Of a stretch of 64,000 bases of DNA, positions 1 to 36,683 are shown piece after piece; position 1 is the stretch's first letter, and every line of letters begins with the position of its first letter. Under the pieces are notes generated by a model that was not told the DNA's origin, did no database searches, and was given only the letters and a program-made list of their open reading frames with translations. The stretch lies in contig OZ241831.1 in the NCBI GenBank assembly GCA_965202585.1, positions 50,158,001-50,222,000 of the forward strand. Direction: 5' to 3'. The position numbers and the translations under genes are program-made. This DNA is from Thalia democratica (lineage: Eukaryota).

Positions 1-88
1 ACAGTTAGATTAATGCTTAAAGCTTTGTTTTTCTAAAAAAACAGCAAAAACAGATTAACAAGTAAAGTTTCACTCTACTACCTAAATG

Positions 89-530
89 GGGTGGGTGTCA
101 CTTTTGCACGAGCGTCACTTTTGCACGAAGGGTCACTTTTGCACGAGGGGACACTTTTGCACGGCGACTCTTTTGCACGAGCGTCACTTTAGCATGAGGG
201 GACACTTTTGCACGGCGTCACTTTTGCACGCAGGGTCACTTTTGCACGAGGGGACACTTTTGCACGGCGACTCTTTTGCACGACTGTCACTTTTGCACAA
301 GGGGACAATTTTGCACGGCGACACTTTTGCACGGAGGGTCACTTTTGCACGATGTGACATTTTTGCACGGCGTGACTTTTGCACGAGGAGACACTTTTGC
401 ACGGCAAATTTTCTTTACGATGACAATTTTCTACAGCAGCATTGTTGCACAACGTCACATTTTTACGATGAAATTTTTGCACAGCGACATTTTGGCAAGA
501 TGAATTTTTTGTACGGAAAATCAATTTTGC
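89..530 (+). repeat. Left modular TIR minisatellite (TTTTGCACG core)
   Basis: Tandem 16-19-bp units, degenerating toward the element interior. Confidence 0.9.
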
Positions 531-1828
531 ATTCAGGCCGATTAAAAGTTGTTTAGCTATTACCAAGTCTGTAACATAAAAAGAAACTGAAAACCAAAAT
601 TTTATAATACACCTATATTAAAGGCAAAAATGAAAGATCTAAAACCTTAAACATTAAATGTTAATGTTAGAAACAAACTAACGAAAAGATAACATAAAAT
701 TATTTATAAAAGATTCATACCAGGGACAATAAAATTATTTTATTTAGAAACTAGGATAAAAATATATTAAGTGTAGGTAAGTTGTTCTAGTTTATTTTAA
801 GTTTTAATATATTAATCAACAACGAGGCCTTTTTATATATTTTACAAATTTATTGTTCATATGATGAACCTAGGCATCAAAACCTAGACCACTTAAACTG
901 GAAGACACATAAAGAAAAAATGAAAAAACACATACAATTTATTAATTAAAACAAAAACAAAAACATAATTTGATATAAAATTTATAGGTTATCATAAAAA
1001 GCAAAATTTTAACCACTAACTTATATTTATTTACGCTTTGATGTAGAACGATCAACATCAAGTATTTAAATGCATTGACTAACAACAAAAATAAAAACCT
1101 AACGCTCCAAGGACATTAACGTTAGGCTCTCATTGGCTTATTTCCTGATCATGGAATGCTGGTTTAAGCATCTCTTGATGCTTGTGATGAACATAAGTTC
1201 AATCTTCCAAATTTTACTCTCCCATTAACTTATCATGATCATGCAACATTATTGTAACGAAATAATCTAAGTTTAAATAATGAAAATGCGCTATTTTATT
1301 GTTTTTTTTATTCTCACGCTAAATTATAAAATAAAAATAAACATCAGGTGAAATCTGAAATAACTTTACACTTCATAAACTAACTAAATCTATATTTTTA
1401 ATTTAACAATTCTTTGAAATAAAAATAACTTTAAAATATATTTTTTAGCAGCTATATAATGCTATTTACAACATCAAGAGAAAATAAGTAAAAATAATAC
1501 TCAAAATTCGTGTTCTAAAGCATTACTAAATTAAGTTTATTTTTCTGTTTAAAAAGTAACAAAATTCAGATTATTTTGATTTAATGTATTTAAAGTTGTT
1601 TTTATTCAAAATTAAAATTATGTATTCAACTAGTTTATTTAAATTAAGCTAATAAATATAAATTAATGAATTGTGGTACGTTGTTACATTGTTCTACGTA
1701 AAAATTCAAATAAAAACTTTACAATAATATTTCATTAAAAAAGTACCACATTTTATTTAATCAAAACAACTTGCGTTTAAAAGCAAAGATTATTTAAGTT
1801 TAAAAGAAAAAAAAACTATTCAAAAAAA

Positions 1829-2269
1829 ATGTCGCCGTGCAAAAGTGTCACATCGTGCAAAAGTGACCCTCTGTGCAAAAGTGTCGCCATGCAAAAGTGT
1901 CCCCTCGTGCAAAAGTGACAGTCGTGCAAAAGAGTCGCCGTGCAAAAGTGTCCCCTCGTGCAAAAGTGACAGTCGTGCAAAAGAGTCGCCGTGCAAAAGT
2001 GTCCCCTCGTGCAAAAGTGACAGTCGTGCAAAAGAGTCGCCGTGCAAAAGTGTCCCCTCGTGCAAAAGTGACCCTGCGTGCAAAAGTGACGCCGTGAAAA
2101 AGTGTCCCCTCGTGCTAAAGTGACGCTCGTGCAAAAGAGTCGCCGTGCAAAAGTGTCCCCTCGTGCAAAAGTGACCCTTCGTGCAAAAGTGACCCTCGTG
2201 CAAAAGTGTCCCCTCGTGCAAAAGTGTCTTCGTGCAAAAGTGACGCTCGTGCAAAAGTGACCCGTTCCC
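1829..2269 (-). repeat. Right modular TIR minisatellite (CGTGCAAAA core, 51-bp trimer period)
   Basis: Reverse complement of the left array; GTGACA recurs at 1915 and 1966 (51-bp period). Confidence 0.9.
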
Positions 2270-2876
2270 ACCTAAATGATCTAAAAACTGAAGAGTTTTT
2301 GGTAAATATGTTGCTCTACATTAAAAAAAAAAGTATACAAATATATTTTCATCTGTTACAGTATAATTTAAAAGAATAAAACTTATAAAACTTAAGCGTC
2401 CTGGACAACACGTTAGACTGTATCCAAGTAGTGTGCGACTCGATAACCGAGTGTTTTTTGTTCACCAGGTCAAAGGACTAAATATTTTAACACTTTCTTT
2501 GTCGTTTAATGAACTCTAAACATTAACATACTAAATAATTTTTTAGTTGATTTTAAAACATACATCGTAGTAAAAACAAATATGGACATTTTTGCTAAAA
2601 AGTACATATAATTTTAAAGTGTTATTATCTAAAATTTTGTTAAGAAAAAAAAAAAAAAAAAACAAGCTTATTAAAAAAAAATTTTTTTGAATAAACACTT
2701 ATTTTTTCAAGAAGAACAGTAAAAATTACACCAAAGCTGTTTTTGACAGTTACTGAAGTTTTATAAAAAACGTACTTTAGCTCTAACTATAGTTAAAAAG
2801 CAATATTTTTATTTTTTTTTTGTTTTTAATAAAACTTATAAACAACGTAGCAAACTCTATACAACAAAAGTGTAAA

Positions 2877-4039
2877 ATGAACGTCAAAGACAAACTAGAA
2901 GCTCTTCTCCTAATCGAGAGAACGGACACAATCCAAAACATCTTCAGATCCTCCACGAACGAGGCATAGAAGAACTGTACGAAACAATTGCAAAGTACTT
3001 CAAATTGGTGCTGAAAATTCACTCCGAAGTGCGAGCCGGCTCCGGAACGATGAAATTTTACCTGAAGAAGCTGATGCGCGAAGTCATGTCTTCCATGCTC
3101 GATTATTGCAACAAGATAAAATCTGTGAGGAGTTTCAGCGGGGTCGGCGTTACGTTCGGTTTCGAGCGGTTCCGAGTCAGCTTCGACTTCAGCGGCTGCA
3201 AGACTCTCATCTCGTCAGAAGATCTTCAAAAGATGCACGAGCTCACGAACAGCGTCGACTCAGTTGAAATGAGGTTCACCGAAGGGAGTTTCTTCGACAA
3301 AACGGCGTCCGGATTGGTTGAAATAGAGCGCGAGTGGGGCAGGCAACGGGCGTTCAAGAGGTACCTCGAGTCGCTGCTGATCCGGTGCGAGAAACTGAAC
3401 AACGTCAGAAAGCACCACGAAAAGTACATTGCCGAGCAGAAGAATTTCAAGCAGTTTTGCCGCGGCGTGGCGCTGAAGGAAGAGCACAATCGAATGCAGA
3501 AAGTCGCTTGGGAGTAGGTTTACAGGAAGGAGGGGGAAGCCAAGCTGGAGAACGTGTTCATCGGGTACTTTTCGTTTTTTCAAAAAATTTTCTTTGTGCA
3601 GAGCAGCTTGAGAGAAGAAGACAGGATCGCGCCCAATGGTTATTCTGTGAAGATCAACAACGAGTTGGACGCGGCTTCGGAAGCGTTTAAAAAGTTCAGT
3701 TCGGACAACGAGTTCTTTTTGAACAACGCCGCAATCAAGCCGAACTTTTTAGTGGACGAACTGCTAGGTTATGAGATAAACGCCGGCAACGTACGCAACT
3801 TTTTCAACCACCGTGTGGCGCACGTGAGCAACTATTCACCCGACTACGAGTTCGACGTTCGAAACATGGTCCGTTTCGTCAACGGGGAGAGCGGAATGAA
3901 GTCCATGGTGCCTTAGGTGCAGCGGGTGAGCAGGAAGCTCACTGCAGGTAATAACTGCAAAATTTGCTTGAGTGAAGCAGAACGGGAGTTGAACTTGCTG
4001 AACAGCAAATACGACTTTGAAAACATTAAGTTGAATTAA
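2877..4039 (+). pseudogene. Progenitor orphan gene (reconstructs to 387 aa, MNVKDKLEALLLIERTDTIQKHLQILHERG...DFENIKLN), three lesions
   Basis: ATG in AAAATG context at 2877; adding one A to the A4 run at 2935-2938 joins it to the frame of ORF 3005-3517; in-frame TAG at 3515-3517 (TGG in array units) and at 3914-3916 (GAG in array units); TAA at 4037-4039; intronless and far more GC-rich than the flanks. Confidence 0.8.
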
Positions 4040-4136
4040 AACAATAACTTTCAAAGTTTTTTTTATTTAATTAATAACTAAATTTCATCAATGATAAGCT
4101 AAGTAAGTATTTAGATTTTTGCAATAAGAACTTATC

Positions 4137-5248
4137 ATGCGCCAAGGTGGCCAAGTGCGCCAAGTCGCATTGTCTATTGATTTTATGTTGCTATAGAAAT
4201 TCATTAGAACTCATAAGAAATCAATGCGTTTCGACACTGTTTCGAGGTCGTATGTTCATCGTTTTCATAAACGCCTCTTGTTTTCTTATCGAAGTAGCTA
4301 TGCCGAAGCTAGTATATATACGCGTCAGTTCGGTTGGAAGTGTGAATTTGTGTGCAAAATTCCACAGAAAGAGAGCTCATATATTCGAAAAGAAGAGAAT
4401 TATGCAAATTTTCGGACACAATTTTTGAATGATTTTGAGTCTACACCTGAAAGAGTTAGTGAAATCGACTGCGCAGAAACGAGTTTCACCGAAGGGAGTT
4501 TCTTCGACAAAGCGGCGTCCGGATTGGTTGAAATAGAGCGGGAGTGGGGCAGGCAACGGGCGTTCAAGAGGTACCTCGAGTCGCTGCTGATCCAGTGCGA
4601 GAAACTGAACAACGTCAGAAAGCACCACGAAAAGTACATCGCCGAGCAAAAGAATTTCAAGCAACTTTGCCGCGGCGTGGCGCTGAAGGAAGAGCACAAT
4701 CGAATGCAGAAAGTCGCTTGGGAGTGGGTTTACAGGAAGGAGGGGAAGCCAAGCTGGAGAACGTGTTCATCGGGTACTTTTCGTTTTTTCAAAAAATTTT
4801 CTTTGTGCTGAGCAGCTTGAGAGAAGAAGACAGGATCGCGCCAAATGGTTATTCTGTGAAGATCAACAACGAGTTAGACGCGGCTTCGGAAGCGTTTAAA
4901 AAGTTCAGTTCGGACAACGAGTTCTTTTTAAACAACGCCGCCATCAAGCCGAACTTTTTAGTGGACGAACTGCTAGGTTATGAGATAAACGCCGGCAACG
5001 TACGCAACTTTTTCAACCACCGTGTGGCGAACGTGAGCAACTATTCGCCCGACTACGAGTTCGACGTTCGAAACATGGTCCGTTTCGTCAACGGGGAGAG
5101 CGGAATGAAGTCCATGGTGCCTGAGGTTCAGCGGGTGAGCAGGAAGATCGCTGCAGGTAACAACTGCAAAATTTGCTTGAGTGAAGCAGAACGAGAGTTG
5201 AATTTGCTGAACAACAAATATGATTTTGAAAACATTAAGTTGAATTAA
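4137..5248 (+). pseudogene. Array-type unit (1,209 bp), frameshifted
   Basis: 8-bp loss in the GCCAAG repeats, 1-bp loss near AAAATTCC and G5 to G4 at GAGGGGAAG relative to intact units. Confidence 0.8.
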
Positions 5249-5345
5249 AACAATAACTTTCAAAGTTTTTTTTATTTAATTAATAACTAAATTTCATCAA
5301 TGATAAGCTAAGTAAGTATTTAGATTTTTGCAATAAGAACTTATC

Positions 5346-5884
5346 ATGCGCCAAGGTGGCCAAGTGCGCCAAGTCGCCAAGTCGCATTGTCTATTGATTT
5401 TATGTTGCTATAGAAATTCATTAGAACTCATAAGAAATCAATGCGTTTCGACACTGTTTCGAGGTCGTATGTTCATAAACGCCTCTTGTTTTCTTATCGA
5501 AGTAGCTATGCCGAAGCTAGTATATATACGCGTCAGTTCGGTTGCAAGTGTGAATTTGTGTGCAAAAAGTCCAGAGAAAGAGAGCTCATATATTCGAAAA
5601 GAAGAGAATTATGCAAATTTTCGGACACAATTTTTTAATGATTTTGAGCCTACACCTGAAAGAGTTAGTGAAATCGACTGCGCAGAAACGAGTTTCATCG
5701 AAGGGAGTTTCTTCGACAAAGCGGCGTCCGGATTGGTTGAAATAGAGCGGGAATGGGGCAGGCGACGGGCGTTCAAGAGGTACCTCGAGTCGCTGCTGAT
5801 CCGGTGCGAGAAACTGAGCAACGTCAGAAAGCACCACGAAAAGTACATCGCCGAGCAGAAGAATTTCAAGCAATTTTGCCGCGG
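5346..5884 (+). pseudogene. Array-type unit truncated at 5884
   Basis: Matches array units (with a 9-bp in-frame deletion, MFINASC) up to TTTTGCCGCGG, then switches to unrelated AT-rich DNA. Confidence 0.8.
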
Positions 5885-6863
5885 TGTAATTGTATGGGCA
5901 ATATAATATGGGCAATTATTAATATGGGCAATATAAACTAAAAAACTAAACAAAGTAAGAGAAAAAGAACGTTGTTTAAACTTGAAAAAAGTTATTTAGA
6001 ACAAAGAAAAAAGTGTAAGGGCTTTTATTAAAATATTTAAACTCTATATATAAGTTATAATATTTTAAAACGCTTAAAACTATATTTTTCTTTACTGAAA
6101 GTGTCTAGTTAATAATAACTAATTAATAAAAAAAAGATTGTACAAACCAAACAAATATGATCATAAGTGTTGTTTTCCAAAACCTAGCCATTAGGTCACA
6201 ATATAGTTTAACCTAACAAAAATTTGTTACCTTAAAAAATACTGTATTAAGTTACTAAAACAAAATAAAAAAAAATTCAAAAACACTAACTTGTTACTTA
6301 AAAAAGTAATAAATGTACTATGCGAAAAACAAGTATTTAAACTGTAAACTTTTTCTATTTTATTTAATAATAATGCAGGCAAAACTTAAAAAGTATTATT
6401 AATATCAAATACCAAAGTACAACTGTATGGTTTCAAGATTCATAATTAAAAAGTAAAACTGAACAGCTTTTAAGAATGAGTAGGCTGAAGCAGTAAGTTT
6501 TTTAATTAGTTACTACCAAATGATGAATTTCATTGTTTTGAAAACGAGATAAATCAGTAATAAATCAGTACTTCAATAACTTTTGAAACCATAAACCATT
6601 TTTCTAATAATTATCAATATTTTACCCAAATAAATACACCTTACCTAAGCGTGTAACAAATAAAGATAAATACAATAATTTAATATTTCAATAGTCAAAA
6701 TAAACAGTAATTAATATAAAACTAATTAAATATCATTAAAAATGTGTACGTAAGTAAGTACGTATAAATACATAAGTCATATAATTCTTTTAAAACTAAA
6801 TTATACAAGTTTTATGTATGTACAAACAAGTAATGAAAAAAAATTGAAGGTAAAATTTTGACT

Positions 6864-7510
6864 CTCTTGAGGTAGCCTAGTAAAATATTTTCAAGAGCAA
6901 CATTTGAGCATCATACGCGTATGCTTGATGTTACACTAGTAAGAGAGACGCTTTTGTGCGTTCGGTCGACTTGAAGCTTAGGGATTTTATAATGTGAAGG
7001 CTTGTATGCATTTAACGAAGAAATCCCTGGACGTCGAGACGGGTAGGCGTCAAGTCGTCGAGGCGGGTTGGTTGGTGGCAGAGATTCGTTATAGCTTGAG
7101 TCGACTGGCCGTCGACTTAAGCTGCCATCGAAAGGCCGTTAAATCGGCCAAAGGTCGTATAGCAGACCTGATTGAATGAGTAAGGAGGGAAATTAGAGCG
7201 AGAGAAGGCAAGTACCGTCCAAAAGCAGCCATAGAAGCCGGCTCTCGCAAGCAGTAAGCTCTGACATGATTCAGCCCAGTTAAAAGTACGTTTGAGTGCA
7301 TATATATGAATGATTGAACCTGTGCATTTGTAAAGGTGAAGCTTCAACCGGGCGACTGAAGCAGGGAAGGCGAGTTAGAAGAAAGTGCACAGGCGAAAGG
7401 CGAAGCACTCAAAATGTGACAGGCAGAGAAGCGGCTGCATCTCACAGTCGCTTTCACGTTCAGAGGTAAAATAAAGCAAAGTATTTTGTGAGGGAAGCAG
7501 AAGCTTTGAG
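6864..7510 (+). ncRNA. Candidate large structured RNA (or ssDNA structure) of unknown family
   Basis: GC-rich island with at least 11 mutually nested helices, e.g. TTTGAGTGC 7291-7299/GCACTCAAA 7405-7413, CCTGTGCATTT 7319-7329/AAGTGCACAGG 7383-7393, CTTGAGTCGAC 7095-7105/GTCGACTTAAG 7111-7121; the imperfect pairs are G-T on the + strand; no credible ORF. Confidence 0.5.
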
Positions 7511-7594
7511 AAAATAATTTAAAAACATGGGAGGGCCTGTTTTTTCGAAAAGTTGTCGGATGCAATTTTCGAATGGAAAGTGTAGGAATGGTGG

Positions 7595-7708
7595 AATATG
7601 GAAAGAAAAGATTGAAAAAAAATTCAGCAAAAAAGGCTCCGATTTCGCCCGCGGGCGAAATCGGAGCCTTTTTTGCTGAATTTTTTTTCAATCTTTTCTT
7701 TCCATATT
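7595..7708. repeat. Perfect 114-bp palindrome with no loop
   Basis: Arms checked as exact complements about the centre CGCCCG|CGGGCG (7651/7652), including the homopolymer lengths (A8/T8, A6/T6). Confidence 0.95.
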
Positions 7709-7901
7709 TTTTATAAAGACGCTCGTCGAAAGATGAGCGTCTTTTTTTTTGCTCAATTTTTTTTCAATCTTTTCTATTCATATTTTTTCAAAGACGCTCG
7801 TCGAAAGATGAGCGTCTTTTTTTTTTGCTCAATTTTTTTTCAATCTTTTCTTTCCATAATTTTTCAAAGACGCTCGTCGAAAGATGAGCGTCTTTTTTTT
7901 T
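7669..7901 (+). terminator. Three tandem 75-76-bp units, each ending in hairpin AAAGACGCTCGTC-GAAA-GATGAGCGTCTTT plus T9-10 (terminator-like)
   Basis: Hairpins at 7715-7744, 7790-7819 and 7866-7895; GNRA loop, one G-T pair, T-tract 3' of the stem; terminator function is inferred only. Confidence 0.45.
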
Positions 7902-10900
7902 ACCGAAAAATTTTTTTGGTTCTGGTTGTATTTTTATCAGTCAACTAACTGTATTTATGAAAATAAATTTTTTCATGTCTTAAGTTTCTAGAGGGTGCCA
8001 CCGAAGGGTTAGCACCTTTTATTTACCAATTTTTTAACTTTCTTCTTGACTGAACCAATAAAAAATCCCCTAACCTAAAACTGATTGATAGTCGCTTAAA
8101 TATTTTTAATTAATTAGTGTTAAATTTTTATTAAATAAAGCTATAAGCATGATGGTTCAAAGCTTCTTTTTTAAATCATACAATTAACTAGATATTAATG
8201 AACGAACGAATTTGTATAAAGTTAACCCGGGGTTTTAAAATGACAGCCTTTTATTTAGTTTTTTATGTTATAAATATGGAAATGGTAGTTTATTTAATTA
8301 TAATAGTTTTTACTAGTATAAAATACAATTAGTACTAAAACGATGATATTTTTGGCAAGGGAAATAAATCGAAAATTGTTAAAAAAGTTTAACAAATTTC
8401 GATACTTGCACTTATCATGTATGTTTTAGTTGATAAATTATTTTAAATAAATATATATATATATAAATATTTTCAATTGCATACAATGTGCTATGAAGAT
8501 CAAAAATTAAGTAACAGACTTTTGGATTTTCACTTAACTATGTCTATTTTTAATTGGTCATTTTAGTAAGCGTTTCAAATACAAAATATGATTAAATATT
8601 ACATTTTGAACATTTTTAAATAGAAATAAATAACGTTCTTGTAAACATTCAATTTTCAAGTATTTAAGTTCTAGTTGTTTATACATAAGTATTTGCATAT
8701 TAAATAACTTTTTTTAAAGCCCGTGATTTGAATCTTATTTGCATTGAATTATATTTATTTAATTTTACATACTGAATAGCGTTTTGTGGAAAAATATTCA
8801 AGTTGTCTTAATTTTTTTATAAAGGTAAATTACAAAATAAAATTCAACTTTTATTACTAAATGTATTAAACAGACTTCAATCTACTTTCTAAAAAATTTA
8901 TTAGAAACGATGATGTTTATTAAAGTTTAAACCTCTATTCGGGGTTTCCCCAAATTTGACAACACATCCCCTCTAAACCATTTTCGCTATCATGGGCGTA
9001 ATAAGTAGGGGGATGAAAAAAGTTTTGTGATTGGATACATTATAAAAACTAATCATTTATCAAAAACAGTTCAAGCTATAAATGGTTTTGGTAAAAAATT
9101 ACGATTTTGAAACGAACCTGACTTTAAATTGTTTTAAACTATTTGATATTACATACTAACTAGCATTTTGTAGAAATATATACAAATGTTAAATACATTT
9201 ACTAAAATAGAAAGCTGAGTCACTTAAAAAAGATAATAACTATATATAACGCGAACAAACTTGATATTTAGTTGATAAAAAATCCGTATAGGTCTTATGC
9301 AATACAAAACTCAAAAACCATTAAGAAAACTGACCAGCGTATCCTTGATTACAGTTGAAATTATCCGATCTTATACCAATAAGGACTGAAGACTTTTTGT
9401 ACATTTTGTATGCACCCATCGATCTAGAAATTTATTGATTAAATTTATTTTTTTATTTCATATATAAATTTATACAAGTATTATCATTTGGAAATTTATT
9501 ACTTGTTCCTTAACTTTTAATTGTTATGAAATCGATTGAATTTTATTTTATATGAAAATTTTTAGAAACAAACTTAGATTTAGAGAAGCAATAACTTGTC
9601 AGAATACTATTTAAATACAATAACCTCTCTCAAATCTATCCACTCTCGTTTTAAATAGACTTCTTAAAATACGCAAAAAGTATACTTAATTTAAACCTTT
9701 TAATGTACCAACAAATTTGTTGTATGTTTTCAATTAACAACAAAATGCTTTAAAATAATATATTTGATTGTTAAAATGTACATCTTGCAAATATTCAGTT
9801 GTTTTAACTTTGTAATATTGTTACATTCTCACGTTTAACTACAAAATTTTGCTGACAAATGTGCGTAAATTCGCGAGAGTTTACTGTAATGTATATACAC
9901 TAGCTATATTTAATACTTTAAAAACTTTGACATATTTAACAAAAACATTCTAAAATTAATTTCTAAAAGATTAACACAGTACAGTGCTTTCTCACTTATC
10001 CGGTAACGTTGGGTTATTTTGTAAACTTAATCGGATATTTATATTACGCAATGCACACAATAAAACAAACACTAAATTTAATACAGAAAGTCATAAAAGC
10101 TTGCAAATGAACAATAAAAAACTTGTTAACTTATTGTGCGCCAAAACTATTATTTAACAATATTAAGTTTGAGAAAAAAATTTAAACAATGAGGTAACTA
10201 TAAACTTATTGCCTAGTTGTAAAAATTGATTTTATCGTGTATTTGAAGCAAAACACTTTAAATTTTAACTTAAATAAACTGTTAGTGACGCATTTGTACA
10301 AGATTTATATCAGCCAGAATGAACCCAATAAAATTTGTAATGAATTACATTCACCTCTCACGAATCTACGCACTCATTTGGTTACGCACTCTCATTTAGT
10401 TACGTATTTTAGAATTCTTAAACAGTTGTAAAAATAAGACATTTCAAAATTTATAGATTGTATATAGAGTTTTAATTGTGAAAATAGATAAACGTTTTTT
10501 GACTTTTATTTAATCCAATATTTAATTCGGGCATTATCAACAAAGTTGAGATGTTCGTGCCATCAACAATAAATAATAAACTCCACCACACGACCAACAA
10601 CAACAGCATCCGAGACAACGTACGACCAGTTTCGTCCTTATTAGTACTCATCAAGCAGGCGTAGCCGCGAGAAACTGCTGTTGAGATCATTGTTTATTAA
10701 CATGATTTTACTTGAAATACCTTTTTTTAGAAAAATAAAGCGCCTTATACAACAACTAAGTGCAAAACACAACAAAAAATATTAAAAGACCTAGGCATTA
10801 TAAAAATTTGTATTTATCTAGCTCTCATATGTATCTAAATGTACGAAATAATCTATTTCTGAAAAAAATAACTATTGGCGCGAGTTAAAATACAAATGTA

Positions 10901-10992
10901 CATTAATATGATTTAATGATTAATGTGATGTAATAGTCTTTAAATAAAGTTTGAGTGTAAATTGTACACTTAAAAAAGTATCCAGTTTTTTT

Positions 10993-11324
10993 CTGGGTTG
11001 TCAAAAGTTTTATGTAAATGCCATCCAGGTTTAAAAAAAATTAGTTTATCGGACCACTTTAAAGTATAAAATTAAACTTAAGTTTAAAAAAATATCTTAA
11101 TATTGAGATAAAAAGATACTGTAAAACGTTCAAATAAGTTTTTTTAATGAAGAATAAGTTTAATGATATAAACACTTTTTATCCAACTGAAATTTCCTTA
11201 CTTTTTATATAAAATAGTTTGACATTTCTGATTTTTTAGTGATTTTAGTTAGAAACTCGACGTTTTTTTGTCTAATTTGTCAAATTCCTGGTTTTTCCTA
11301 TTTTCCAGGTATTTTGCAACACTG
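10993..11324. mobile_element. Degenerate MITE with CAGGGTTGCCA-type TIRs (copy at 23002-23333)
   Basis: CTGGGTTGTCA at 10993 and TTGCAACACTG at the right end; subterminal AATTTGTCAAATTCC(T/A)GGTTTTTC shared with 14918-15278. Confidence 0.4.
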
Positions 11325-12091
11325 TTTCTTGATACAATCTTTTTAAAAATGACACAATAATGAATAACTCTTGAAAAACGTAATTAAAGTACATAGAGAA
11401 TAGAAAGCAAAATCACAACGATATAAGTAACATAGTCCTTTGAATAATCATTTAACATCATAACAAAAAAAATTAAGACAAAACATAACAATAACTACAG
11501 TGGATTTCAGACTAATTCACACATAATTTTGTATATAACCTTAAACAAATTTAACTCAAGCTGTCAACCCTACAACAAACTATTTAATAACTTTATGCTA
11601 ATAAGAGTTAATAAAATAATTGAAGAAAAATATAAAACAAAAAACAATCACTTTTAACGATTAATTAAAGTTTTACATAACTTGAAATGACTCAGATTTT
11701 AAAACTGAATAAACAAACGTTTAAGAAAACACTCAACAGTAAATTCATCTAAATAAAGGTACCGGAATCAAAAACGAAATTGACAAACAAAAAACATACA
11801 AACTACAGCCGTAATCTGTTTTAAAAATTAAATTGAAACATTAGGTACAAACTTAAACTAAAGGCAGAACAGTTTTGCTTTTAATAATGAATCATATAAA
11901 CTTACAATCTGTCTTATTATCTTCTCAATCTAATTTTAAAGTTAAAAACTATTAGAAGCTTATACCTTATTATTTTCTTAGTTACAGCTAAGAAACTGAT
12001 CTATTTCTTTTTTTAAGTCTACTAATGAACATGAATCTAAACATATTTGTACATTTTTGTCTTGACAGTTTACTTCTAATACTTAACTCAC

Positions 12092-12176
12092 ATTTTCGAA
12101 AAAGACAGTTGCAAAAATCGTCTGGTGCCCATGGATTAGTGAATCTTTCCAGGTTCCATCCAATATCGTCACTGCT
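12092..12176 (-). CDS. Candidate internal exon of a spliced host gene (AVTILDGTWKDSLIHGHQTIFATVFFEN); copy at 24101-24185
   Basis: TTTTATTTTAACAG acceptor and AAT|GTGAGT donor on the - strand, stop-free, GC above background; no homologue recognised. Confidence 0.3.
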
Positions 12177-13839
12177 CTGTTAAAATAAAACTATATTACT
12201 TACTATTGTTACTCAAAGTTAAACTTTTTCAAAGAAGGTAGTTGAAATAAGTATGAATTTTATTTTTAACATTATAAAAAAAAAATACATAAGTATAAAA
12301 ATGACAACAAACAAAAAATTCAGATTTTCTATTAATTAAGCTGTGAGAGATGTTGTGCTAGTTTAATTATTATGTAATTTAAACATAATTTTGTTGCTGA
12401 ATGTTTTATTCTACAATTTTAATTTTGCCGTGAAATTTAATGTGCAAGTTCAGAAATAGATAGGACACCAATTTAATTACTTTGCACACTACCAAGTAGT
12501 TATATAAAATAAATTGTTTAAACTTTTGATTGCAAGGAAAATACTTAAAAACCTGATGGAAAAGAAATCAATAACGTTTTGATACAAAAAAAATAACAGA
12601 AATACATAACAAAGTTTGTTAAAAGTTAAGTAAGTGATGAACTAGAGCAGGACTTTAAGTGATAACTTATCAGTCAATTACCAACAACTTTAAGCACTAA
12701 GGGCAGAAGAAGCAGTTTAGATCATAAGATGTATTGCATGCCAAGACTTAAAAACACTTCTTTATTAAAAGACCATGGCGTTTGAAACATTCTAACAGAC
12801 AACTTCGAGGACTTCAGTTAAAAAATAACAAATAGAATAACGCAAACACCATTGAATAAACACCTTATCTTACAACATAAATATTTTATTCTAAACTGAT
12901 TTAATACTTAAACACTTATTGTAATGATAGGATAAGTAATAAAATAAATTGTTTTGCTAGTTTAATAAACTAAAAAAAAATCCAAAAACTAAGCAAACGG
13001 AGAATTCGGAAGTACTTTGTAGAGCAATGAGTGGCTTGAATAAAAAAATAACTAAAAATATATGTTCCTTCATTTTAGTTTTAAGTAATTCACTTCAAAT
13101 TTTCAGGAAACATCCCTTTATAATATTGCGATTAAAGTAAAAGAGGTGGAATTATGAAAAAAATATAGACGAAAATAGATAAAGATTTTTTTTTCTAATC
13201 AACAGATCAATAGAAAATCCTTTTTTACCAGTTGTTCAAAATTTATTAAATAGTTCTCAGAACAGTTTCTGAAATGATTGCTCAAAAACTGTAGGATGAG
13301 AAATGTTTTAAACGAATTAATCTACTTTTACCTTTTTAATTTGCATCTCCCACTAGGAACCTAGTAAACTCTTTAACTTTGATCTTTTTTTTTATCAAAA
13401 CTACTTAAATTTCTTGAAGTCACTGGTAGCTTAATCATTTATGTAAAAAAAAACATTAATCCAAAGTGTTTAGCCCCTGTGCCCTTAACATTATATTTAA
13501 TTGATGAAGTAAAAATACTATTTTGCAGTTTAATATCTAGTAGAATATTACACATATGGTATAATGTTATTAAACTTAAAATTCATGATTCTGATTAATT
13601 TATATACCATTAAGTCTAGTCAGGTTTATTTGTGTTTATACTAGTTATCTGAAAGATTATAAAATTTTGTTAAGCTTAAATAAAAGAAAAGTGTTCAAAC
13701 ACTTGTGGCTAATAATAATCTTAAAGCTTCTTTAATAAACACAATAAAAATATTTTCTGTAATTTGTGTTTAGAAATTAAAAAAGAATTTATTTTATTTT
13801 AGAAATTAAACTTTAGATAGACTTTATTAATTAACTAAC

Positions 13840-13913
13840 TAATAATGAAAAGGTTGCAGTCAAAAGCCATCTCAAAATGGAGTTAAGATTTTCAATGTCA
13901 TCACATTTGTAAG
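13840..13913 (-). CDS. Candidate internal exon (YKCDDIENLNSILRWLLTATFSLL); copy at 25849-25922
   Basis: TTTTTAACAG acceptor and TTA|GTTAGT donor on the - strand, stop-free. Confidence 0.28.
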
Positions 13914-14917
13914 CTGTTAAAAAATAATTAGTTTGCAATGTAAAAGTGAACTAAAAGGTAATATTTAAAAATTAAGCATTGCCCTTAAAACATATGAGAA
14001 CAAAATCTAAAATTATATTCAACAATTTGAAGTGGAGATATACTTCTTATCAGAATGTGATTTGAATGCAACTTTTGATTTAAACGTTGTTTTAGAGCAG
14101 TGCCTTCCAAAGAATGGGAAAAATTGTCTTTTGTGAGGATTGGCAATATAAAGTAAGGGGGTCAAAAAAAAGAGATTTAAAAACATTGTTTAAATATCAT
14201 TGTTAACTCGATTTGCTCAAACAAAATTTAACAACAATATCTTAAATGTCATAATTTATATATAGAAGAGTCGTTATATTATATTATAACTAAAGATTTT
14301 AGTTATAAATATTAAATAATAAATCAGTTTTAATTTTAGAATAAATTTACAAATACTTTTATTCAATAAAAAATATTAGTTTACAGAATTATCGACTATA
14401 TAAAACTTTCTTATGAGTATATGTCTCTGCCAAACTAATTAATGAAATAATTATTAGTTGAACAAAAAACTTAAAAAACAGTTTGGCCACAAGTTTTTTT
14501 TTTGAAATTTCTTCAAGGTTCTTAAAAGTACACAATTTTTTGTATATTTTAAGTTTGAAATAAAGTTTAGGGTAAAGAACTGTCTATCATTATTGAAAAG
14601 ATGTGTTAAACCTACTTCAAATGTATTTTTTGATGAAAAAAGCTTTTGATGATAAGAAATTATGTTATCTAGACCATAGGTTTTTTTATCAAACTGAAGT
14701 TTTACTACTTTACATGTTAACAATTTTTTAATTTCCAGGTTTTTTAGTGATATAAGTTTAAAATTTCCTTCAAGATTTCTCAACTTTCAGGTTTTTTTAG
14801 CCTTAACTGTCACATTCAACATTTTTCTAGGATTCCAGGTTAAGTGGCAACCCTAATTCTTGATGTAGAAAAAAGTCTGTCCTGAGAATTTTAAAAGTCC
14901 TGAAACTATCCTGAGAT

Positions 14918-15278
14918 CAGGATTGCCACTTGTTTTTTTAATTTTTTTTCAGGTTTTCCAAGTTTCTTCCAGGTTTTTAAAAGTACATATTTTTGGGTCT
15001 ATTTTTAGTTTTAAGTTAGGTAAGTAAGGTAAGAAAACTGTGTTAAATTGTATAAAAACATCAAAAAGATACTGAAAGCTACTTTTATTCCCTTATTTAA
15101 TATAGAAATTTTTTATGATGACAAAAAATGTTTATCTATGCAAAATATTTTTTGTTTTAAATTAAACATGTTAAAACTGTTTAAAATTCCAGGTTTTTTG
15201 CTTAATATTCCAGCTTTTTTTTGCCCAAATTGTCAAATTCCAGGTTTTTCAAGGTTTCCAGGTAAAGTGGCAACCCTG
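14918..15278. mobile_element. MITE with CAGG(A/G)TTGCCACTT ... AAGTGGCAACCCTG TIRs (copy at 26927-27287)
   Basis: Inverted 14-bp termini around a ~360-bp AT-rich body with TTCCAGGTT subterminal repeats; a further right end at ~14842-14855; TSD not clear. Confidence 0.5.
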
Positions 15279-18200
15279 TGAGGTTTTCATAAAAAATCAT
15301 AACTGTCCTCAGTCATCCTGGATTTTAAAAAAGTTAAAATATTCTGAGTTACCATAAGTCATTCTGAGATTTACTAGGATTATAAAATATCCTGAGTACC
15401 CTAAATGTGTGGCCAACCTGTCATTTTCTTGTTCATTAAATGTTTTAGCATAGTGGTTATAAAAAGACATAAACTTTTTGACTATTATTGTTTTTACAGA
15501 GAAAATATATTTTCTGAATAATTGTGGCATGTAACTTGATTAGTATCAGCCATTAAAATTGTTTTAAATTTGCAAAACAACTAGGAATTTTTTCTGACCA
15601 TTTCTAAATTTAAATACGAGGCTAATTAATATTAAAATATAAAACAGTTATGATTAATTTATAAAAAATTTTGATAAAATTATTCAAATAAAATTATTTT
15701 ATCAATTGTGTGTATCAAATAAAGATTTAAAGTACATTATAATGATATTTACTATTAAATTATAGAAAACATTACCATATCACAATATTTTTGTTATCAT
15801 TAATATTAACTACAATGATAATACTTACCTTTGTCACAGATATAAAATGGATGGCACCTATTTTAAGTCTATTTACAATATTTAGACTAGAAAATATGTG
15901 GGAAATAACAAATAGTCTCAAAGCAGTCGTGATAAACTAGGTACTTCAAGGATAGAAAATAAATTATTTTTATGTTTTAACAAACCATAAACTAAAAATA
16001 TTAGCTTGTCAATTAGGATAAACCATTTTTTGTACATGTTTAAATTAAAATAATAATTTGAAACAATTTTTTACATGCAATTTAAGTTCTTTAATGTTCA
16101 ACTGATTACTCTAGAATAAGTTACTAAACTGAGTTGTAAAAAATTTACGACCGTATAACAATTGCATAAAAGTTAAATGTTTTACGTTTTTTCTTTTTAC
16201 GTTTTTCTAAAATATATTATTAATGATTAGTTTGAAGTTTGAAACACTAGAATTTGAAAACGCTAAAAACGCAGTACATTTGTTGTATTTTAATTTAAAT
16301 AAACCATGCTGACTCAAAAAAAATTCAAAAATTTTGTACAGACGACAAAAGCAATAATAATATCCTAAAAAAATTGAACTTTTTATAAAATTGTTGTCAA
16401 ATGGCTAGAAAAAAAATAACGCGAAACTTTGTTTTATTTTAGTTTGAAATATTCGGTAAAAAAATGAAAAAGTCGGTAAAAGTTTTTTAGAGCCAAGCCT
16501 GTGCCACGAGACAAACTCAAGTTGTTAGTTAGAAGCAAGTTTAAGTAAGCTTTTGGTAAACTGTAACTTGGATTTCGTTTTTATTGAATACTGTCAGTCA
16601 CACCTAAATGTCAGCCAGTTACATCTAAAAACATTTTGTTCGTCAGTCTACAAACAGCTTAATTATATTTTATAACATTTTTTAAATACTTAGTGTAGCA
16701 TTTAAACTGAGTAAAAGAAAGACATCCGTTAAAATTGTTTTCTTGTTGCAACAAACAAACTTTGTAGAAGTAAATTCAACATTCAACTGTTTTTGTTTAT
16801 AATTTATAATTATTTCGATGTTAACACTTCTATAAATTTGAAGTTTTATAAAAACTGAACTTGTCTACCTACTTATTATTTTTATGATTAAATGTTACAA
16901 TGTGATATTTATATAAACTCACAAAAATGATTTTTACTTAATTAATTTTATTTTGATTTTTATTTTACTTGATTAATGAGTTTTTAACCTACTACATATA
17001 AGTAAAACATAATTCAATTTTTATCGTTTTACTTTGGCTTTATATTAATAGAACATGATTTTTAAACAAAAGTTTGTTTTAAATAAAGTAAGTTTATTTG
17101 AAATAGCTTAAACATTACAAACTAAATTACATCGAAAATAACATACCGCGGCAAATATATTATAAGTAAGCCCCTTAAATAAGTAACGTGTAATAAGGTG
17201 TAAAATAAAATACTATAATTTTAAATTTCGTTTTTCATTAGGAAATAGTATAATACGTTTTTCATTATTGCTTTTATCCTTAATGCTGTAAGATGTTTAC
17301 ATTTTAACTGATTTTATGTCAGCATACAATACATTAATACAGAGGTTGTTTTTGAAATTTAAATTAATCGTAAAACTTATTTTAAATATTTACTTTGACA
17401 TTGCATATTTTTTAGCTGTGGCTTAATTTTTTAAAACATACACTTATTTTAAATAAACATTTAAAAATTGATTTATAAATGCTATATCAAACTATAAGTT
17501 TTGCTACTTTCTTATACATAGTAATTTACAAAATGTATAATACATTTTCTAGTACAAAATGAATTTCAGCATAAAGTAAATGTTCTTAATTTTTTAGATA
17601 TAAAACTATAAAAATGACACTAAGTTTTGATAAAAGCAATTTGCAAATTTAAAACGTTGGAGTTGACCTTTAAAATTATCGCACCTTTGGAATTTTGAGA
17701 TTGTTTTAAAGATTAACTTTCGTTTAAGTACAATTTACACCAGTTTACAAACAATGAAAAGTCTTGTATTTGAAAAAATCCTTGACCGAACGCTTACAAC
17801 ATTTGCCAGTTGTTAAAGTAAATTGCTTGAAAGCTTATAGTTAATACTTTGATTAGTATATTTCTATTAAGACAATAATTGCAGTATTTATTTAAAATAC
17901 GAAACTATTTTATACAGCTGGACGGTTTTAAATTAAACTTAAAAACCTCAAAATATCAAGTAATTAGCTTTGCAAAAAAGTTGTTTAATTTTGTTTCGCT
18001 CTTAAAACAACACTCATAAAAAACTGTTTTTAAGAGTTTAAAGACATAAACAAAGCAAACAAAACTTGAAAATGATTGTTTTATTTTCTTTATGTTAACC
18101 AGAATTTTTCAACTCTGTTTGAACCACTTTGCAGTTATCTTATTACCAGATGGTCAAATAAATTTCCCCTGCACTGATAGAAGAGTTTTCATTAGTAACT

Positions 18201-19417
18201 TTTCATTTCAAAACACAGTAAGTGGTAAAAAAACTTTTGCACACAAAATTTACTTTAAACATCAAAGTCTTTTTACGGTTTTGAAAATTATCAATTTTAT
18301 GATTAATTAGTATATAAATGTATAAGTATAACTTTATCGAGACCGCAAATATTTTTTACTAAGTTAACAAGCCATAAATACGTCTCAATAGACCATAAAC
18401 TTGAAATACATATACGTTTTTACTAGTTAAAGTTATCATAATATAAAAAGCTCTTGTCTATGTAAGGACAATATGTTTTTTAAATAAATTTTCTTTTTGT
18501 TAGTTGTTGAAGTTTGTATAAAAACAATTGTAAAACTTTTATTTGTTTTGCTTATAACTTGATAAAATTGAAGTGAAAAGTTATAAAAGTTTGAATATTT
18601 TTTTCAAATATTTTACTTTAAAAAAATTTAATTTAAATTTTACCAGCACTAAGTACTTTGATAGTAATAGAAAGAGTTTTAAACGTAAGTTAACTATTAT
18701 TTGAAACTATTTAGTTAAATATAATGCTTAATACATAACATTTATGACTAGTATATATATCTAATTAGTAATTAAAAGTGTTGTTTCAAGAGTATATTGT
18801 ATGTTTCAATTCAAAAAACACTTATTTACGCAGAAATGTGTGAGTACAAACTAAAATTAAGTGTTAAAATTTCTTAATTTATATAGCTTTATTTATATTT
18901 TTTGAATAACTGATAAATTATACAAATAACGTTTAATGCAATTTACGATAACACTGATGTTTCCAATTACGTTTTATTATTTTTCTCATTAGTGCTTTCT
19001 ACAAAATTATTAAAAATACTGTAAAGTTTTGTACGTTTTGCGCAACATTTTGTACTACAAAGTACAAAGAAAAACAATATTTTTTAATCTTTCATATTAT
19101 TTTGAGATTAAAACACTACTTGTGTGATACTATATAAAAATTAAAGTGGTATAAATATGAATATTAAGTCGTTTTTAGTTAATTTAATGAATAAACGTTG
19201 AGAAATAAAACTTATATAAATAGTATATTGCAAAAATAGAACTAATAGAGTTTATTTTATTTTATTTTTACATTCTATTTAAATTTACTTAGAATTTTAA
19301 ATCTACAGTCTATTACTATCAATAATACTACAGTTAGATTAATGCTTAAAGCTTTGTTTTTCTAAAAAAACAGCAAAAACAGATTAACAAGTAAAGTTTC
19401 ACTCTACTACCTAAATG

Positions 19418-21511
19418 GGGTGGGTGTCACTTTTGCACGAGCGTCACTTTTGCACGAAGGGTCACTTTTGCACGAGGGGACACTTTTGCACGGCGACTCT
19501 TTTGCACGAGCGTCACTTTAGCATGAGGGGACACTTTTGCACGGCGTCACTTTTGCACGCAGGGTCACTTTTGCACGAGGGGACACTTTTGCACGGCGAC
19601 TCTTTTGCACGACTGTCACTTTTGCACAAGGGGACAATTTTGCACGGCGACACTTTTGCACGGAGGGTCACTTTTGCACGATGTGACATTTTTGCACGGC
19701 GTGACTTTTGCACGAGGAGACACTTTTGCACGGCAAATTTTCTTTACGATGACAATTTTCTACAGCAGCATTGTTGCACAACGTCACATTTTTACGATGA
19801 AATTTTTGCACAGCGACATTTTGGCAAGATGAATTTTTTGTACGGAAAATCAATTTTGCATTCAGGCCGATTAAAAGTTGTTTAGCTATTACCAAGTCTG
19901 TAACATAAAAAGAAACTGAAAACCAAAATTTTATAATACACCTATATTAAAGGCAAAAATGAAAGATCTAAAACCTTAAACATTAAATGTTAATGTTAGA
20001 AACAAACTAACGAAAAGATAACATAAAATTATTTATAAAAGATTCATACCAGGGACAATAAAATTATTTTATTTAGAAACTAGGATAAAAATATATTAAG
20101 TGTAGGTAAGTTGTTCTAGTTTATTTTAAGTTTTAATATATTAATCAACAACGAGGCCTTTTTATATATTTTACAAATTTATTGTTCATATGATGAACCT
20201 AGGCATCAAAACCTAGACCACTTAAACTGGAAGACACATAAAGAAAAAATGAAAAAACACATACAATTTATTAATTAAAACAAAAACAAAAACATAATTT
20301 GATATAAAATTTATAGGTTATCATAAAAAGCAAAATTTTAACCACTAACTTATATTTATTTACGCTTTGATGTAGAACGATCAACATAAAGTATTTAAAT
20401 GCATTGACTAACAACAAAAATAAAAACCTAACGCTCCAAGGACATTAACGTTAGGCTCTCATTGGCTTATTTCCTGATCATGGAATGCTGGTTTAAGCAT
20501 CTCTTGATGCTTGTGATGAACATAAGTTCAATCTTCCAAATTTTACTCTCCCATTAACTTATCATGATCATGCAACATTATTGTAACGAAATAATCTAAG
20601 TTTAAATAATGAAAATGCGCTATTTTATTGTTTTTTTTATTCTCACGCTAAATTATAAAATAAAAATAAACATCAGGTGAAATCTGAAATAACTTTACAC
20701 TTCATAAACTAACTAAATCTATATTTTTAATTTAACAATTCTTTGAAATAAAAATAACTTTAAAATATATTTTTTAGCAGCTATATAATGCTATTTACAA
20801 CATCAAGAGAAAATAAGTAAAAATAATACTCAAAATTCGTGTTCTAAAGCATTACTAAATTAAGTTTATTTTTCTGTTTAAAAAGTAACAAAATTCAGAT
20901 TATTTTGATTTAATGTATTTAAAGTTGTTTTTATTCAAAATTAAAAATATGTATTCAACTAGTTTATTTAAATTAAGCTAATAAATATAAATTAATGAAT
21001 TGTGGTACGTTGTTACATTGTTCTACGTAAAAATTCAAATAAAAACTTTACAATAATATTTCATTAAAAAAGTACCACATTTTATTTAATCAAAACAACT
21101 TGCGTTTAAAAGCAAAGATTATTTAAGTTTAAAAGAAAAAAAAACTATTCAAAAAAAATGTCGCCGTGCAAAAGTGTCACATCGTGCAAAAGTGACCCTC
21201 TGTGCAAAAGTGTCGCCATGCAAAAGTGTCCCCTCGTGCAAAAGTGACAGTCGTGCAAAAGAGTCGCCGTGCAAAAGTGTCCCCTCGTGCAAAAGTGACA
21301 GTCGTGCAAAGAGTCGCCGTGCAAAAGTGTCCCCTCGTGCAAAAGTGACAGTCGTGCAAAAGAGTCGCCGTGCAAAAGTGTCCCCTCGTGCAAAAGTGAC
21401 CCTGCGTGCAAAAGTGACGCCGTGAAAAAGTGTCCCCTCGTGCTAAAGTGACGCTCGTGCAAAAGAGTCGCCGTGCAAAAGTGTCCCCTCGTGCAAAAGT
21501 GACCCTTCGTG
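19418..21511. mobile_element. Foldback-like element copy 2, right TIR truncated
   Basis: Same left TSD ACCTAAATG (19409-19417); similarity stops at GACCCTTCGTG (21511), about 86 bp short of the element end. Confidence 0.85.
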
Positions 21512-22435: not shown

Positions 22436-22635
22436 NNNNNNNNNNNNNNNNNNNNNNNNNNNNNNNNNNNNNNNNNNNNNNNNNNNNNNNNNNNNNNNNN
22501 NNNNNNNNNNNNNNNNNNNNNNNNNNNNNNNNNNNNNNNNNNNNNNNNNNNNNNNNNNNNNNNNNNNNNNNNNNNNNNNNNNNNNNNNNNNNNNNNNNNN
22601 NNNNNNNNNNNNNNNNNNNNNNNNNNNNNNNNNNN
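22436..22635. other. Assembly gap (200 N)
   Basis: Run of exactly 200 N. Confidence 1.
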
Positions 22636-33607: not shown

Positions 33608-34214
33608 ACCTAAATGATCTAAAAACTGAAGAGTTTTTGGTAAATATGTTGCTCTACATTAAAAAAAAAAGTATACAAATATATTTTCATCTGTTACAGT
33701 ATAATTTAAAAGAATAAAACTTATAAAACTTAAGCGTCCTGGACAACACGTTAGACTGTATCCAAGTAGTGTGCGACTCGATAACCGAGTGTTTTTTGTT
33801 CACCAGGTCAAAGGACTAAATATTTTAACACTTTCTTTGTCGTTTAATGAACTCTAAACATTAACATACTAAATAATTTTTTAGTTGATTTTAAAACATA
33901 CATCGTAGTAAAAACAAATATGGACATTTTTGCTAAAAAGTACATATAATTTTAAAGTGTTATTATCTAAAATTTTGTTAAGAAAAAAAAAAAAAAAAAA
34001 CAAGCTTATTAAAAAAAAATTTTTTTGAATAAACACTTATTTTTTCAAGAAGAACAGTAAAAATTACACCAAAGCTGTTTTTGACAGTTACTGAAGTTTT
34101 ATAAAAAACGTACTTTAGCTCTAACTATAGTTAAAAAGCAATATTTTTATTTTTTTTTTGTTTTTAATAAAACTTATAAACAACGTAGCAAACTCTATAC
34201 AACAAAAGTGTAAA

Positions 34215-35377: not shown

Positions 35378-35474
35378 AACAATAACTTTCAAAGTTTTTT
35401 TTATTTAATTAATAACTAAATTTCATCAATGATAAGCTAAGTAAGTATTTAGATTTTTGCAATAAGAACTTATC

Positions 35475-36586: not shown

Positions 36587-36683
36587 AACAATAACTTTCA
36601 AAGTTTTTTTTATTTAATTAATAACTAAATTTCATCAATGATAAGCTAAGTAAGTATTTAGATTTTTGCAATAAGAACTTATC

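Follow-up and report, generated by a model that had tools for sequence, protein, structure and literature searches.

Layout and genomic distribution of the cassette

The window analysed here is a stretch of 64,000 nucleotides from Thalia democratica (C7:50158001-50222000), taken from an AT-rich assembly of 801.8 Mb. Within it lies a cassette of ~1.3 kb at about 6744-8107 (Table 1), whose middle part (6864-7510) had been singled out in a preliminary description as a structured RNA candidate. The layout of the cassette was established from 15 aligned copies and their flanks (upstream alignment: 13 copies) and from the distant L026 family. Its order is fixed: an upstream motif pair comes first, then a TATA-like box with its A/G-rich leader, the 19-mer that is invariant, a short palindrome and the core of 0.6-0.75 kb; behind the core there follow a run of T6-7, a large palindrome and hairpin/T-run modules. 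Behind these modules there is usually a further 19-mer, and then another hairpin and a conserved block to ~8107. This layout is kept even in L026, of which BLAST can align no more than the first ~100 nt.

Table 1. Features of the cassette in window coordinates
Feature	Position	Strand	Remarks
Upstream motif pair (GTGTACGTAAGTAAGTACGTATAAATAC)	6744..6771	+	Diverged form, in the window family, of GTGCGTAC...GTGCGTACC; from the upstream alignment of 13 copies
TATA-like AT-rich stretch TTTTATGTATGTACAAA (TATAGGTATAAA in other families), then A/G-rich leader	6810..6858	+	From the alignment
Invariant 19-mer TGACTCTCTTGAGGTAGCC	6859..6877	+	
Imperfect conserved palindrome AGCATCATACG/CGTATGCTTGAT	6907..6929	+	Core CATACGCGTATG at 6912-6923
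Core	6930..7539	+	GC- and purine-rich, non-coding; contains the stretch of the preliminary description
Core hairpins kept in most subfamilies, first part	6980-87/7021-28, 7095-7105/7111-21, 7134-38/7145-49, 7152-56/7165-69, 7198-7204/7242-48	+	
Core hairpins kept in most subfamilies, second part	7291-99/7405-13, 7323-29/7383-89, 7341-46/7357-62, 7430-36/7446-52	+	
Two helices added in this analysis	7259-64/7460-65, 7494-98/7503-07	+	First helix: CTCTGA with TCAGAG
T6 run within TTTTTTCGAAAA	7540..7551 (run 7540-7545)	+	T6-7 in all 15 aligned copies and L026
Perfect loop-less palindrome	7595..7708	.	114 bp, 57-nt arms, CCGCGG centre
Three 76-bp tandem modules	7669..7901	+	Each with a 10-bp stem, GAAA loop, then T9-10
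Module hairpins	7718-7741, 7793-7816, 7869-7892	+	
Further hairpin GGTGCCACC-GAAG-GGTTAGCACC, then TTTTATTT	7994..8024	+	Versions in other subfamilies
Downstream block ...AATAAAAAATCCCCTAACCTAAAACTGATTGATAGTCGCT	8055..8107	+	Mostly common to L026; L009 shares ...AAAAAATCCCCTAACCA; from direct comparison

In most families homology begins abruptly at the upstream motif pair, ~150-170 bp ahead of the 19-mer, and the conserved cassette ends at about the downstream block. The distance from the TATA-like box to the 19-mer that follows it varies, at roughly 30-60 bp. Positions 6834-6847 match, as inverted complement, the T-run part of the 76-bp modules further downstream. Within 1 mismatch, the genome contains 758 copies of the 19-mer. 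Most other subfamilies have a further copy towards the 3' end of the cassette, inverted in most of them; this 3' copy forms an abutted inverted-plus-direct pair in L025, is direct in L026 and L032, and is deleted in the window family.

The stretch, described earlier as a structured RNA candidate, is not unique in the genome. BLAST returned at least 65 matches in the same genome, at identities of 100, 97-99, 85, 83, 80 and 74% with further subfamilies at 70-73%, and a 29-mer motif was matched 124 times within 2 mismatches. The exact pattern of 19-mer plus palindrome was present in 108 copies. Nearly all copies found with these two patterns stand in arrays, at spacings of 17-60 kb, on C1, C2, C4, C5, C6, C7, C9 and many unplaced contigs. 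As a rule, each unit of the 18-45-kb head-to-tail arrays, which lie on at least seven chromosomes, contains one cassette (copy spacing in separate arrays: 18.4, 19.5, 22.5, 22.6 and 24.9 kb). The repeat unit within the window measures ~19.3 kb; positions 1-5880 recur at 31339-37227 with 99.6% identity, and positions 10627-21511 recur at 22636-33521 with 99.99% identity. Being composed of head-to-tail multi-kilobase units of high internal identity, these are macrosatellites, or large-unit tandem arrays.

The AT-rich bulk of the unit was found only in the array family of the window (C7 near 50 Mb, C6 at 2.0-2.5 Mb and a few unplaced contigs). The cassette diverges more slowly than its flanks: between the window family and L009-L012 it is 81-83% identical and the homologous downstream DNA 68-71%, and in more distant pairs the cassette alone can still be aligned. 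L009, a copy that stands alone, is accompanied by ~1.9 kb of flank of the array type. These comparisons suggest that the array units share ancestry well past the cassette and that the cassette has changed more slowly than the remainder of the unit. Within the alignment of 15 copies, invariant blocks of 15-21 nt adjoin freely varying stretches.

No homologue was obtained by exact-pattern scans of metagenome contigs (two patterns), viral contigs and prokaryotic genomes, or by blastn against phages and plasmids. ORF-like pieces in the upstream satellite gave no Pfam match above cut-off, and a full-text literature search on cassette motifs returned no relevant paper. What lies at this locus is a cassette that is repeated and specific to its lineage, with a stop zone of an unusual kind and palindromes that appear to renew themselves.

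Composition and fold of the core

Several statements of the preliminary description were borne out by the window copy. The stretch is a GC-rich island (GC content of 0.456, compared with 0.21-0.24 in the flanks), and purines make up 59% of its bases. It has no ORF, each frame containing 6-19 stops with none open; protein coding was rejected, with six frames closed in six subfamilies and indels that are not multiples of three. The stretch had also been said to match no recognisable family. Rfam gave 0 matches across the 64-kb window at gathering scores and nothing within the core at E<=10 (window) or E<=1 (five other subfamilies); at the permissive E-values only the palindromes drew generic sub-threshold matches to miRNA hairpins. 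Group I/II introns, RNase P/MRP, HEARO, OLE, GOLLD, ROOL and small ribozymes were thereby rejected, as were 7SK, 7SL and telomerase RNA, none of which reached the Rfam gathering score.

All 11 stems listed earlier were present as placed, with 87 pairs made up of 83 Watson-Crick and 4 G-T pairs and 0 mismatches. Perfect stems of at least 8 bp within 130 nt numbered 4, compared with a mean of 0.55 in shuffled sequences. The minimum free energy of the 647-nt stretch was -208.4 kcal/mol on the + strand (z -4.24) and -162.9 kcal/mol on the - strand (z -3.02), so that the window copy did better than the shuffled controls named earlier as a check. The minimum free energy fold pairs domains 1 and 3 otherwise than had been proposed.

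Conservation of the fold was assessed on a core alignment of 15 copies, termed A1, in which both the original helices and a refined helix set (the trimmed structure plus two added helices) were scored. The original structure was 90.9% paired in A1 and 90.3% paired in shuffles (5/500). Double changes were found at 7 pairs of the original helices, compared with 3.4 in shuffles (9/500), and at 5 pairs of the refined set, compared with 2.4 (37/1000); covariation, the second check named earlier, was marginal. Some compensatory change was present in core hairpins 5, 9 and 11. Nine of the 11 helices were 88-99% paired across copies, mostly because the sequence itself is conserved.

The proposed nesting of domains breaks down when subfamilies are compared: seven copies have lost the outer helix of domain 1, and the helix 7074-81/7122-29 is paired in only 60% of cells. 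Subfamilies also show internal duplications of ~84-180 nt and the loss of whole helices, which fit relaxed constraint. The earlier claim that imperfect pairs are only G-T and never A-C is correct for the listed helices of the window copy, which contain 4 G-T pairs, a pattern that arises because the helices were chosen that way. It fails across the 15 copies, where G-U was found in 26 and A-C in 15 pair columns of the original helices, and in 20 and 13 columns, respectively, of the refined set. The strand bias of the core is accordingly modest.

Fold scores varied likewise among families. On the + strand, L009 (z -1.2) and L010 (z -0.6) folded no better than shuffles; L014, L025 and L031 gave z-scores of ~-4 on either strand, the - strand equalling or surpassing the + strand; and L026 reached -4.9 on the + strand and -3.5 on the - strand. 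The - strand scored as well or better in four subfamilies. The fold z-scores of the core are therefore inconsistent between families and without strand bias, and RNA structure in the core is weakly supported. The stretch had been offered as a new large ncRNA, ribozyme or mobile-RNA element. The mobile option fits the repetition; a single novel ncRNA gene does not fit at least 124 copies, and a ribozyme or intron family is opposed by the lack of a match.

The stop zone and the large palindrome

The palindrome and terminator-like hairpins that had been noted directly behind the stretch proved to be a perfect 114-bp palindrome and three modules of a hairpin plus T9. Across subfamilies, 1-8 hairpin/T-run modules are present per cassette, with T7-10 after each. 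The hairpins occur in 12 sequence variants, every one of which combines a stem of 10 bp with a loop of GAAA, AAAA or GTAA and is followed by at least T6; in L026 this place is taken by a different stem, of 13 bp. The two main hairpin types differ at three positions that are changed on both sides of the stem (A-T to G-C, C-G to T-A, T-A to A-T). Non-Watson-Crick pairs in the stop-zone hairpins, which are distributed over six stem positions, are 19 G-T and 0 A-C. Among the hairpin plus T-run variants in the loci, 36 of 37 fold better on the + strand (for example, -13.6 compared with -5.0 kcal/mol), the lone exception (L030) being located outside the cassette. Apart from these hairpins, the 20-kb unit has no strong terminator-like site.

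Compensation in the hairpins, together with their strand-biased folding, indicates that a single-stranded form of the + strand is under selection in the stop zone. The GNRA loops and the tolerance of G-U pairs point to RNA as the selected form, single-stranded DNA being the less probable alternative. Given the downstream hairpins with compensation and G-U bias, transcription of the + strand is plausible.

The large palindrome is a different case. Its inner part is a GC hairpin between A6 and T6, and its size ranges across families from 104 to 118 bp. Perfect arms over 47-59 nt were found in 18 of 21 arm variants. The arms differ between families by many substitutions and indels, and those of L026 cannot be aligned to those of the window. 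Arms that stay perfect, though selection at the RNA level would tolerate G-U, point to arm-to-arm copying of DNA. Both the perfect palindromes and the inverted 19-mers have the appearance of DNA-level features. Since the palindromes vary between subfamilies and are perfect in each copy, they provide a clean natural case of arm-to-arm sequence copying. Abutted palindromes of an inverted and a direct 19-mer also occur, and L025 has a 279-bp tandem derivative consisting of 19-mers and a hairpin module only. A Transib/RAG1-like transposon family also contains the 19-mer, ~215 bp in from its ...CCCACTGTG 3' end, and an ORF fragment of this family gave a weak match to the C-terminus of the RAG1 recombinase; cassette and Transib copies share only ~50 nt around the 19-mer.

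Public sequencing runs were searched for the stretch. Four runs contained it at a flat, DNA-like depth, and among the RNA runs listed in two run searches none was shown to contain it. Runs X2 and X4, ascribed to relatives, contain 64% and 32% of the sampled words, respectively. One marine metatranscriptome contig of 313 nt matched positions 6890-6973 only (84 nt, 89%). A Pol III gene of type 3 has an external promoter, with a TATA box ~30 bp upstream and a proximal element, and a T-run terminator. The cassette has an invariant T6-7 run and a TATA-like box at the variable distance given above; it also contains four internal T4 runs, which would hinder Pol III.

Interpretation and comparison with known systems

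Our preferred reading, which we hold tentatively and rate somewhat short of probable, is that the stretch would be the core of a repeated, one-way, non-coding transcription unit on the + strand, and the constrained part of a macrosatellite family. The region with the GTGCGTAC motif pair, the TATA-like box and the A/G-rich leader would act as a promoter. A moderately structured RNA of 0.65-0.85 kb would start near the invariant 19-mer and carry several locally conserved hairpins. Transcription would end in a stop zone made up of the T6-7 run, the perfect palindrome, in which an A-run and a T-run border the inner hairpin, and 1-8 hairpins that have a GNRA loop and T7-10 behind them. Such stop signals resemble those for a polymerase that terminates at T-runs, and the enzyme may be one such as Pol III. 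The RNA, or the act of transcription, may serve the arrays or the cell.

Other readings were weighed against the same data. The cassette could be a DNA-level repeat module, that is, a non-autonomous foldback, TIR or rolling-circle (Helentron/HINE-like) element or an amplification/recombination module by which the arrays are seeded or maintained, with hairpins and palindromes that act in single-stranded + strand DNA and no stable RNA of importance. We regard this as rather unlikely, though it is the strongest of the competing readings. It would account for the 19-mer being inverted at both ends in most families, for its 758 copies, for the abutted 19-mer palindromes and the short L025 derivative, and for large palindromes of 104-118 bp that are perfect despite the differences between families, as arm-to-arm DNA copying predicts and RNA-level selection does not. 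Fold z-scores that are similar on either strand agree with it as well, and HINEs, too, combine subterminal inverted repeats with a palindrome at the 3' side, tandem repeats in the centre and boundaries rich in T (PMC4067079). The ends of homology speak on both sides: in several distant pairs it starts 0-17 nt from the 19-mer and stops at the inverted copy, whereas in most families it reaches ~150-170 bp beyond the 19-mer on the upstream side and at least 70-200 bp past the inverted copy, so that the 19-mers are not termini. No target-site duplication or empty site was found, and the isolated copy L009 bears array-type flank. The small hairpins accept G-T and never A-C and have GNRA loops, which is typical of RNA. 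The genome gave no match to Helitron_like_N (PF14214), which is a weak negative, since control genomes were likewise blank. Particular element classes were rejected on similar grounds. For a TIR-bounded MITE with target duplication, homology passes both 19-mers and the flanks hold only A- and T-runs. LTR-like traits are present, with TG...CA ends formed by the two 19-mers and an A/G-rich composition over the 15-30 nt upstream; an LTR or solo LTR was rejected because the T-rich sequence that follows ...GAGAGTCA lacks a TGG-type primer site in every family and conservation runs past both ends. A Transib-derived MITE with shared CACWRTG-type termini does not agree with the internal position of the 19-mer in Transib and the ~50 nt shared, and a Helentron or HINE, judged by the position of its subterminal repeats, does not agree with the conserved DNA upstream of the 5' 19-mer.

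It is quite improbable that the cassette is a neutral, decaying repeat, in which the stems are by-products of local inverted and tandem duplications and conservation stems from gene conversion within arrays and from the easy alignment of GC-rich sequence. The marginal covariation of the core, the poor + strand folds of L009 and L010, the large indels and duplications among families and the strong homogenisation implied by within-array identities of 99.6-99.99% would all be expected from it. An ordered layout that persists as far as L026 would not, nor would terminator hairpins with three fully compensated positions and a G-T to A-C ratio of 19:0, or invariant blocks of 15-21 nt beside freely varying stretches. 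Intergenic spacers of rDNA have a promoter-like region, a structured GC-rich stretch and tandem terminator modules. By analogy the cassette might descend from such a spacer, its parts being a promoter of the spacer, a short structured RNA made from it and Pol I terminators in several copies, and might have been detached from the rRNA genes and amplified as separate arrays; the similar arrangement and unit sizes in the rDNA range would suit this origin, which we nevertheless consider very unlikely. The 64-kb window is without rRNA, and the rDNA unit of this genome, located with an ITS1 primer pattern, measures 15.1-15.8 kb and lies on other contigs, among them the starts of C9 and C10, as judged from the first 100 of 279 matches listed.

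Returning to the transcription unit, a more far-reaching form of it would be an undescribed multicopy RNA gene of eukaryotes: a 0.65-0.85-kb ncRNA transcribed from macrosatellites by a polymerase that terminates at T-runs, with ends of bacterial style formed by GNRA hairpins and U-tracts, and with a palindrome renewed by hairpin-templated DNA copying that also drives amplification of the arrays. We think this unlikely. If the cassette is transcribed, more than 100 copies of a long non-coding RNA gene are kept in the genome, the stop signals have the look of bacterial intrinsic terminators, an unusual trait in a eukaryotic nucleus, and a handle on the maintenance or amplification of very large tandem arrays would be gained. 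If it is merely a repeat module, it is an ordinary lineage-specific repeat. Pending RNA data, the finding is of moderate interest.

The large structured bacterial RNAs OLE, GOLLD, HEARO and ROOL are similar to the putative transcript in being 0.6-0.8 kb long and rich in hairpins, in lacking an ORF and in being followed by a terminator. The cassette differs from these, and from ribozymes and introns, by the lack of a covariance-model match, by weak covariation and by its eukaryotic host. Its stop zone is like bacterial Rho-independent terminators and the T-run termination of Pol III, with a GC-rich 10-bp stem, a GNRA tetraloop and T7-10 on the same strand; several such signals are lined up after a structured non-coding stretch, and the large palindrome, composed of A-run, hairpin and T-run, resembles a two-way terminator. 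In contrast to bacterial terminators, the host is a eukaryotic nuclear genome, and no similar sequence was found in prokaryotic genomes, plasmids, phages or viral contigs. Compared with typical Pol III products, the presumed RNA would be far longer and would contain four internal T4 runs.

HINE/DINE-1 elements are non-autonomous, Helentron-associated rolling-circle transposons whose subterminal inverted repeats are located 2-4 nt from the 5' end and 38-60 bp from the 3' end (PMC4067079). They are like the cassette in having inverted repeats of 12-19 bp near both ends, 3' palindromes, central tandem repeats and T-rich boundaries (PMC4067079), and the 5' repeat of the window family nests a short inverted repeat (CTCTTGAG...CAAGAG). 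Unlike in HINEs, ~165 bp of conserved DNA precede the 19-mer, and the copies are mostly bound to arrays rather than dispersed. No Rep/helicase partner was indicated by PF14214, for which control genomes were blank too, and no TT-flanked empty sites were found.

The arrays themselves can be compared with human DXZ4, D4Z4 and the RNU1 and RNU2 snRNA arrays, which are macrosatellites or large-unit arrays with a conserved non-coding or small-RNA gene. They share with these systems head-to-tail units of kilobases to tens of kilobases, very high identity within arrays and a short GC-rich conserved segment in fast-drifting unit DNA. The present cassette differs in that it is without a match to a known snRNA or lncRNA and carries a battery of hairpins and T-runs together with a perfect palindrome, and in its distribution over dozens of arrays on seven chromosomes, between which the cassettes are 71-100% identical.

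Palindromes of the cassette

Among 21 arm variants of the large palindrome in the ~1.3-kb non-coding cassette, 18 had both arms perfect over 47-59 nt. Between families, the arms diverged by many substitutions and indels, and those of the distant cassette family L026 could not be aligned with the arms in the window. Perfect arms within variants, combined with divergence between families, imply copying from arm to arm at the DNA level.

Read depth over the segment containing the short imperfect palindrome (window 6840-7023) was 10-15x that of neighbouring array DNA in three DNA-like runs, with loose ends at 6890 and 6947. The loose ends show that the palindrome segment is common to many more copies, in which it has different flanks. 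The same A-rich flank upstream of the segment was present in a metatranscriptome contig.

Array structure and accompanying repeats

The largest cassette array (C2:92.58-94.01 Mb) comprised ~30 units at a spacing of 26-33 kb. Orientation changed blockwise from + to - and back to +; the array is thus built as large inverted segments. In the window, an assembly gap (N run, ~22440-22640) coincided with a jump in the second array unit, where sequence corresponding to position 2183 continues as sequence corresponding to 10627.

Copies of a 1.2-kb tandem repeat were 95-98% identical. At ~1219 bp, the unit length is not divisible by three, and a Pfam scan of the ORF-like pieces (≤234 aa) gave no match. 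An AT-rich stretch of ~1.4 kb was bordered on both sides by arrays of a 17-18-nt unit (CACTTTTGCACGAGGGG) in opposite orientations, a foldback-like layout.

Repeats and palindromes in the window and at other loci of the same genome
Feature	Position	Strand	Basis or copies
Loop-less palindrome	window 7595-7708; equivalent position in L009-L035 and L026		arm comparison
1.2-kb GC-rich, purine-skewed tandem repeat	window 3266-5884; 34604-64000		2.2 copies; at least 24 copies
Inverted arrays, 17-18-nt unit	window 99-403 / 1831-2263	+ / -	
Recurrences of the inverted array pair	window 19428-19732 / 21160-21511; 31437-31741 / 33169-33601		
Transib-type transposon family	L027-L030, L033, L034, L036-L038, L040, L041; e.g. 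L040:3900-5400	- (L040 example)	

Sequence context of the invariant 19-mer

Window 6858-6886 contained TTGACT, a 17-nt spacer and TAAAAT, resembling the hexamers of bacterial sigma-70 promoters. TTGACT lies within the invariant 19-mer, and a TAnAAT hexamer 17-18 nt downstream was retained in 11 of the 15 aligned cassette copies, as judged from the alignment. Sigma-70-like hexamer pairs numbered 14 versus 14.5 expected by chance; such matches are frequent by chance in AT-rich DNA.

The 19-mer, together with ~30 flanking nt, was also present in the Transib-type family, ~215 bp inside its 3' end (...CCCACTGTG). The ORF fragment of this family weakly matched the C-terminus of the RAG1 recombinase (Pfam E 0.018).
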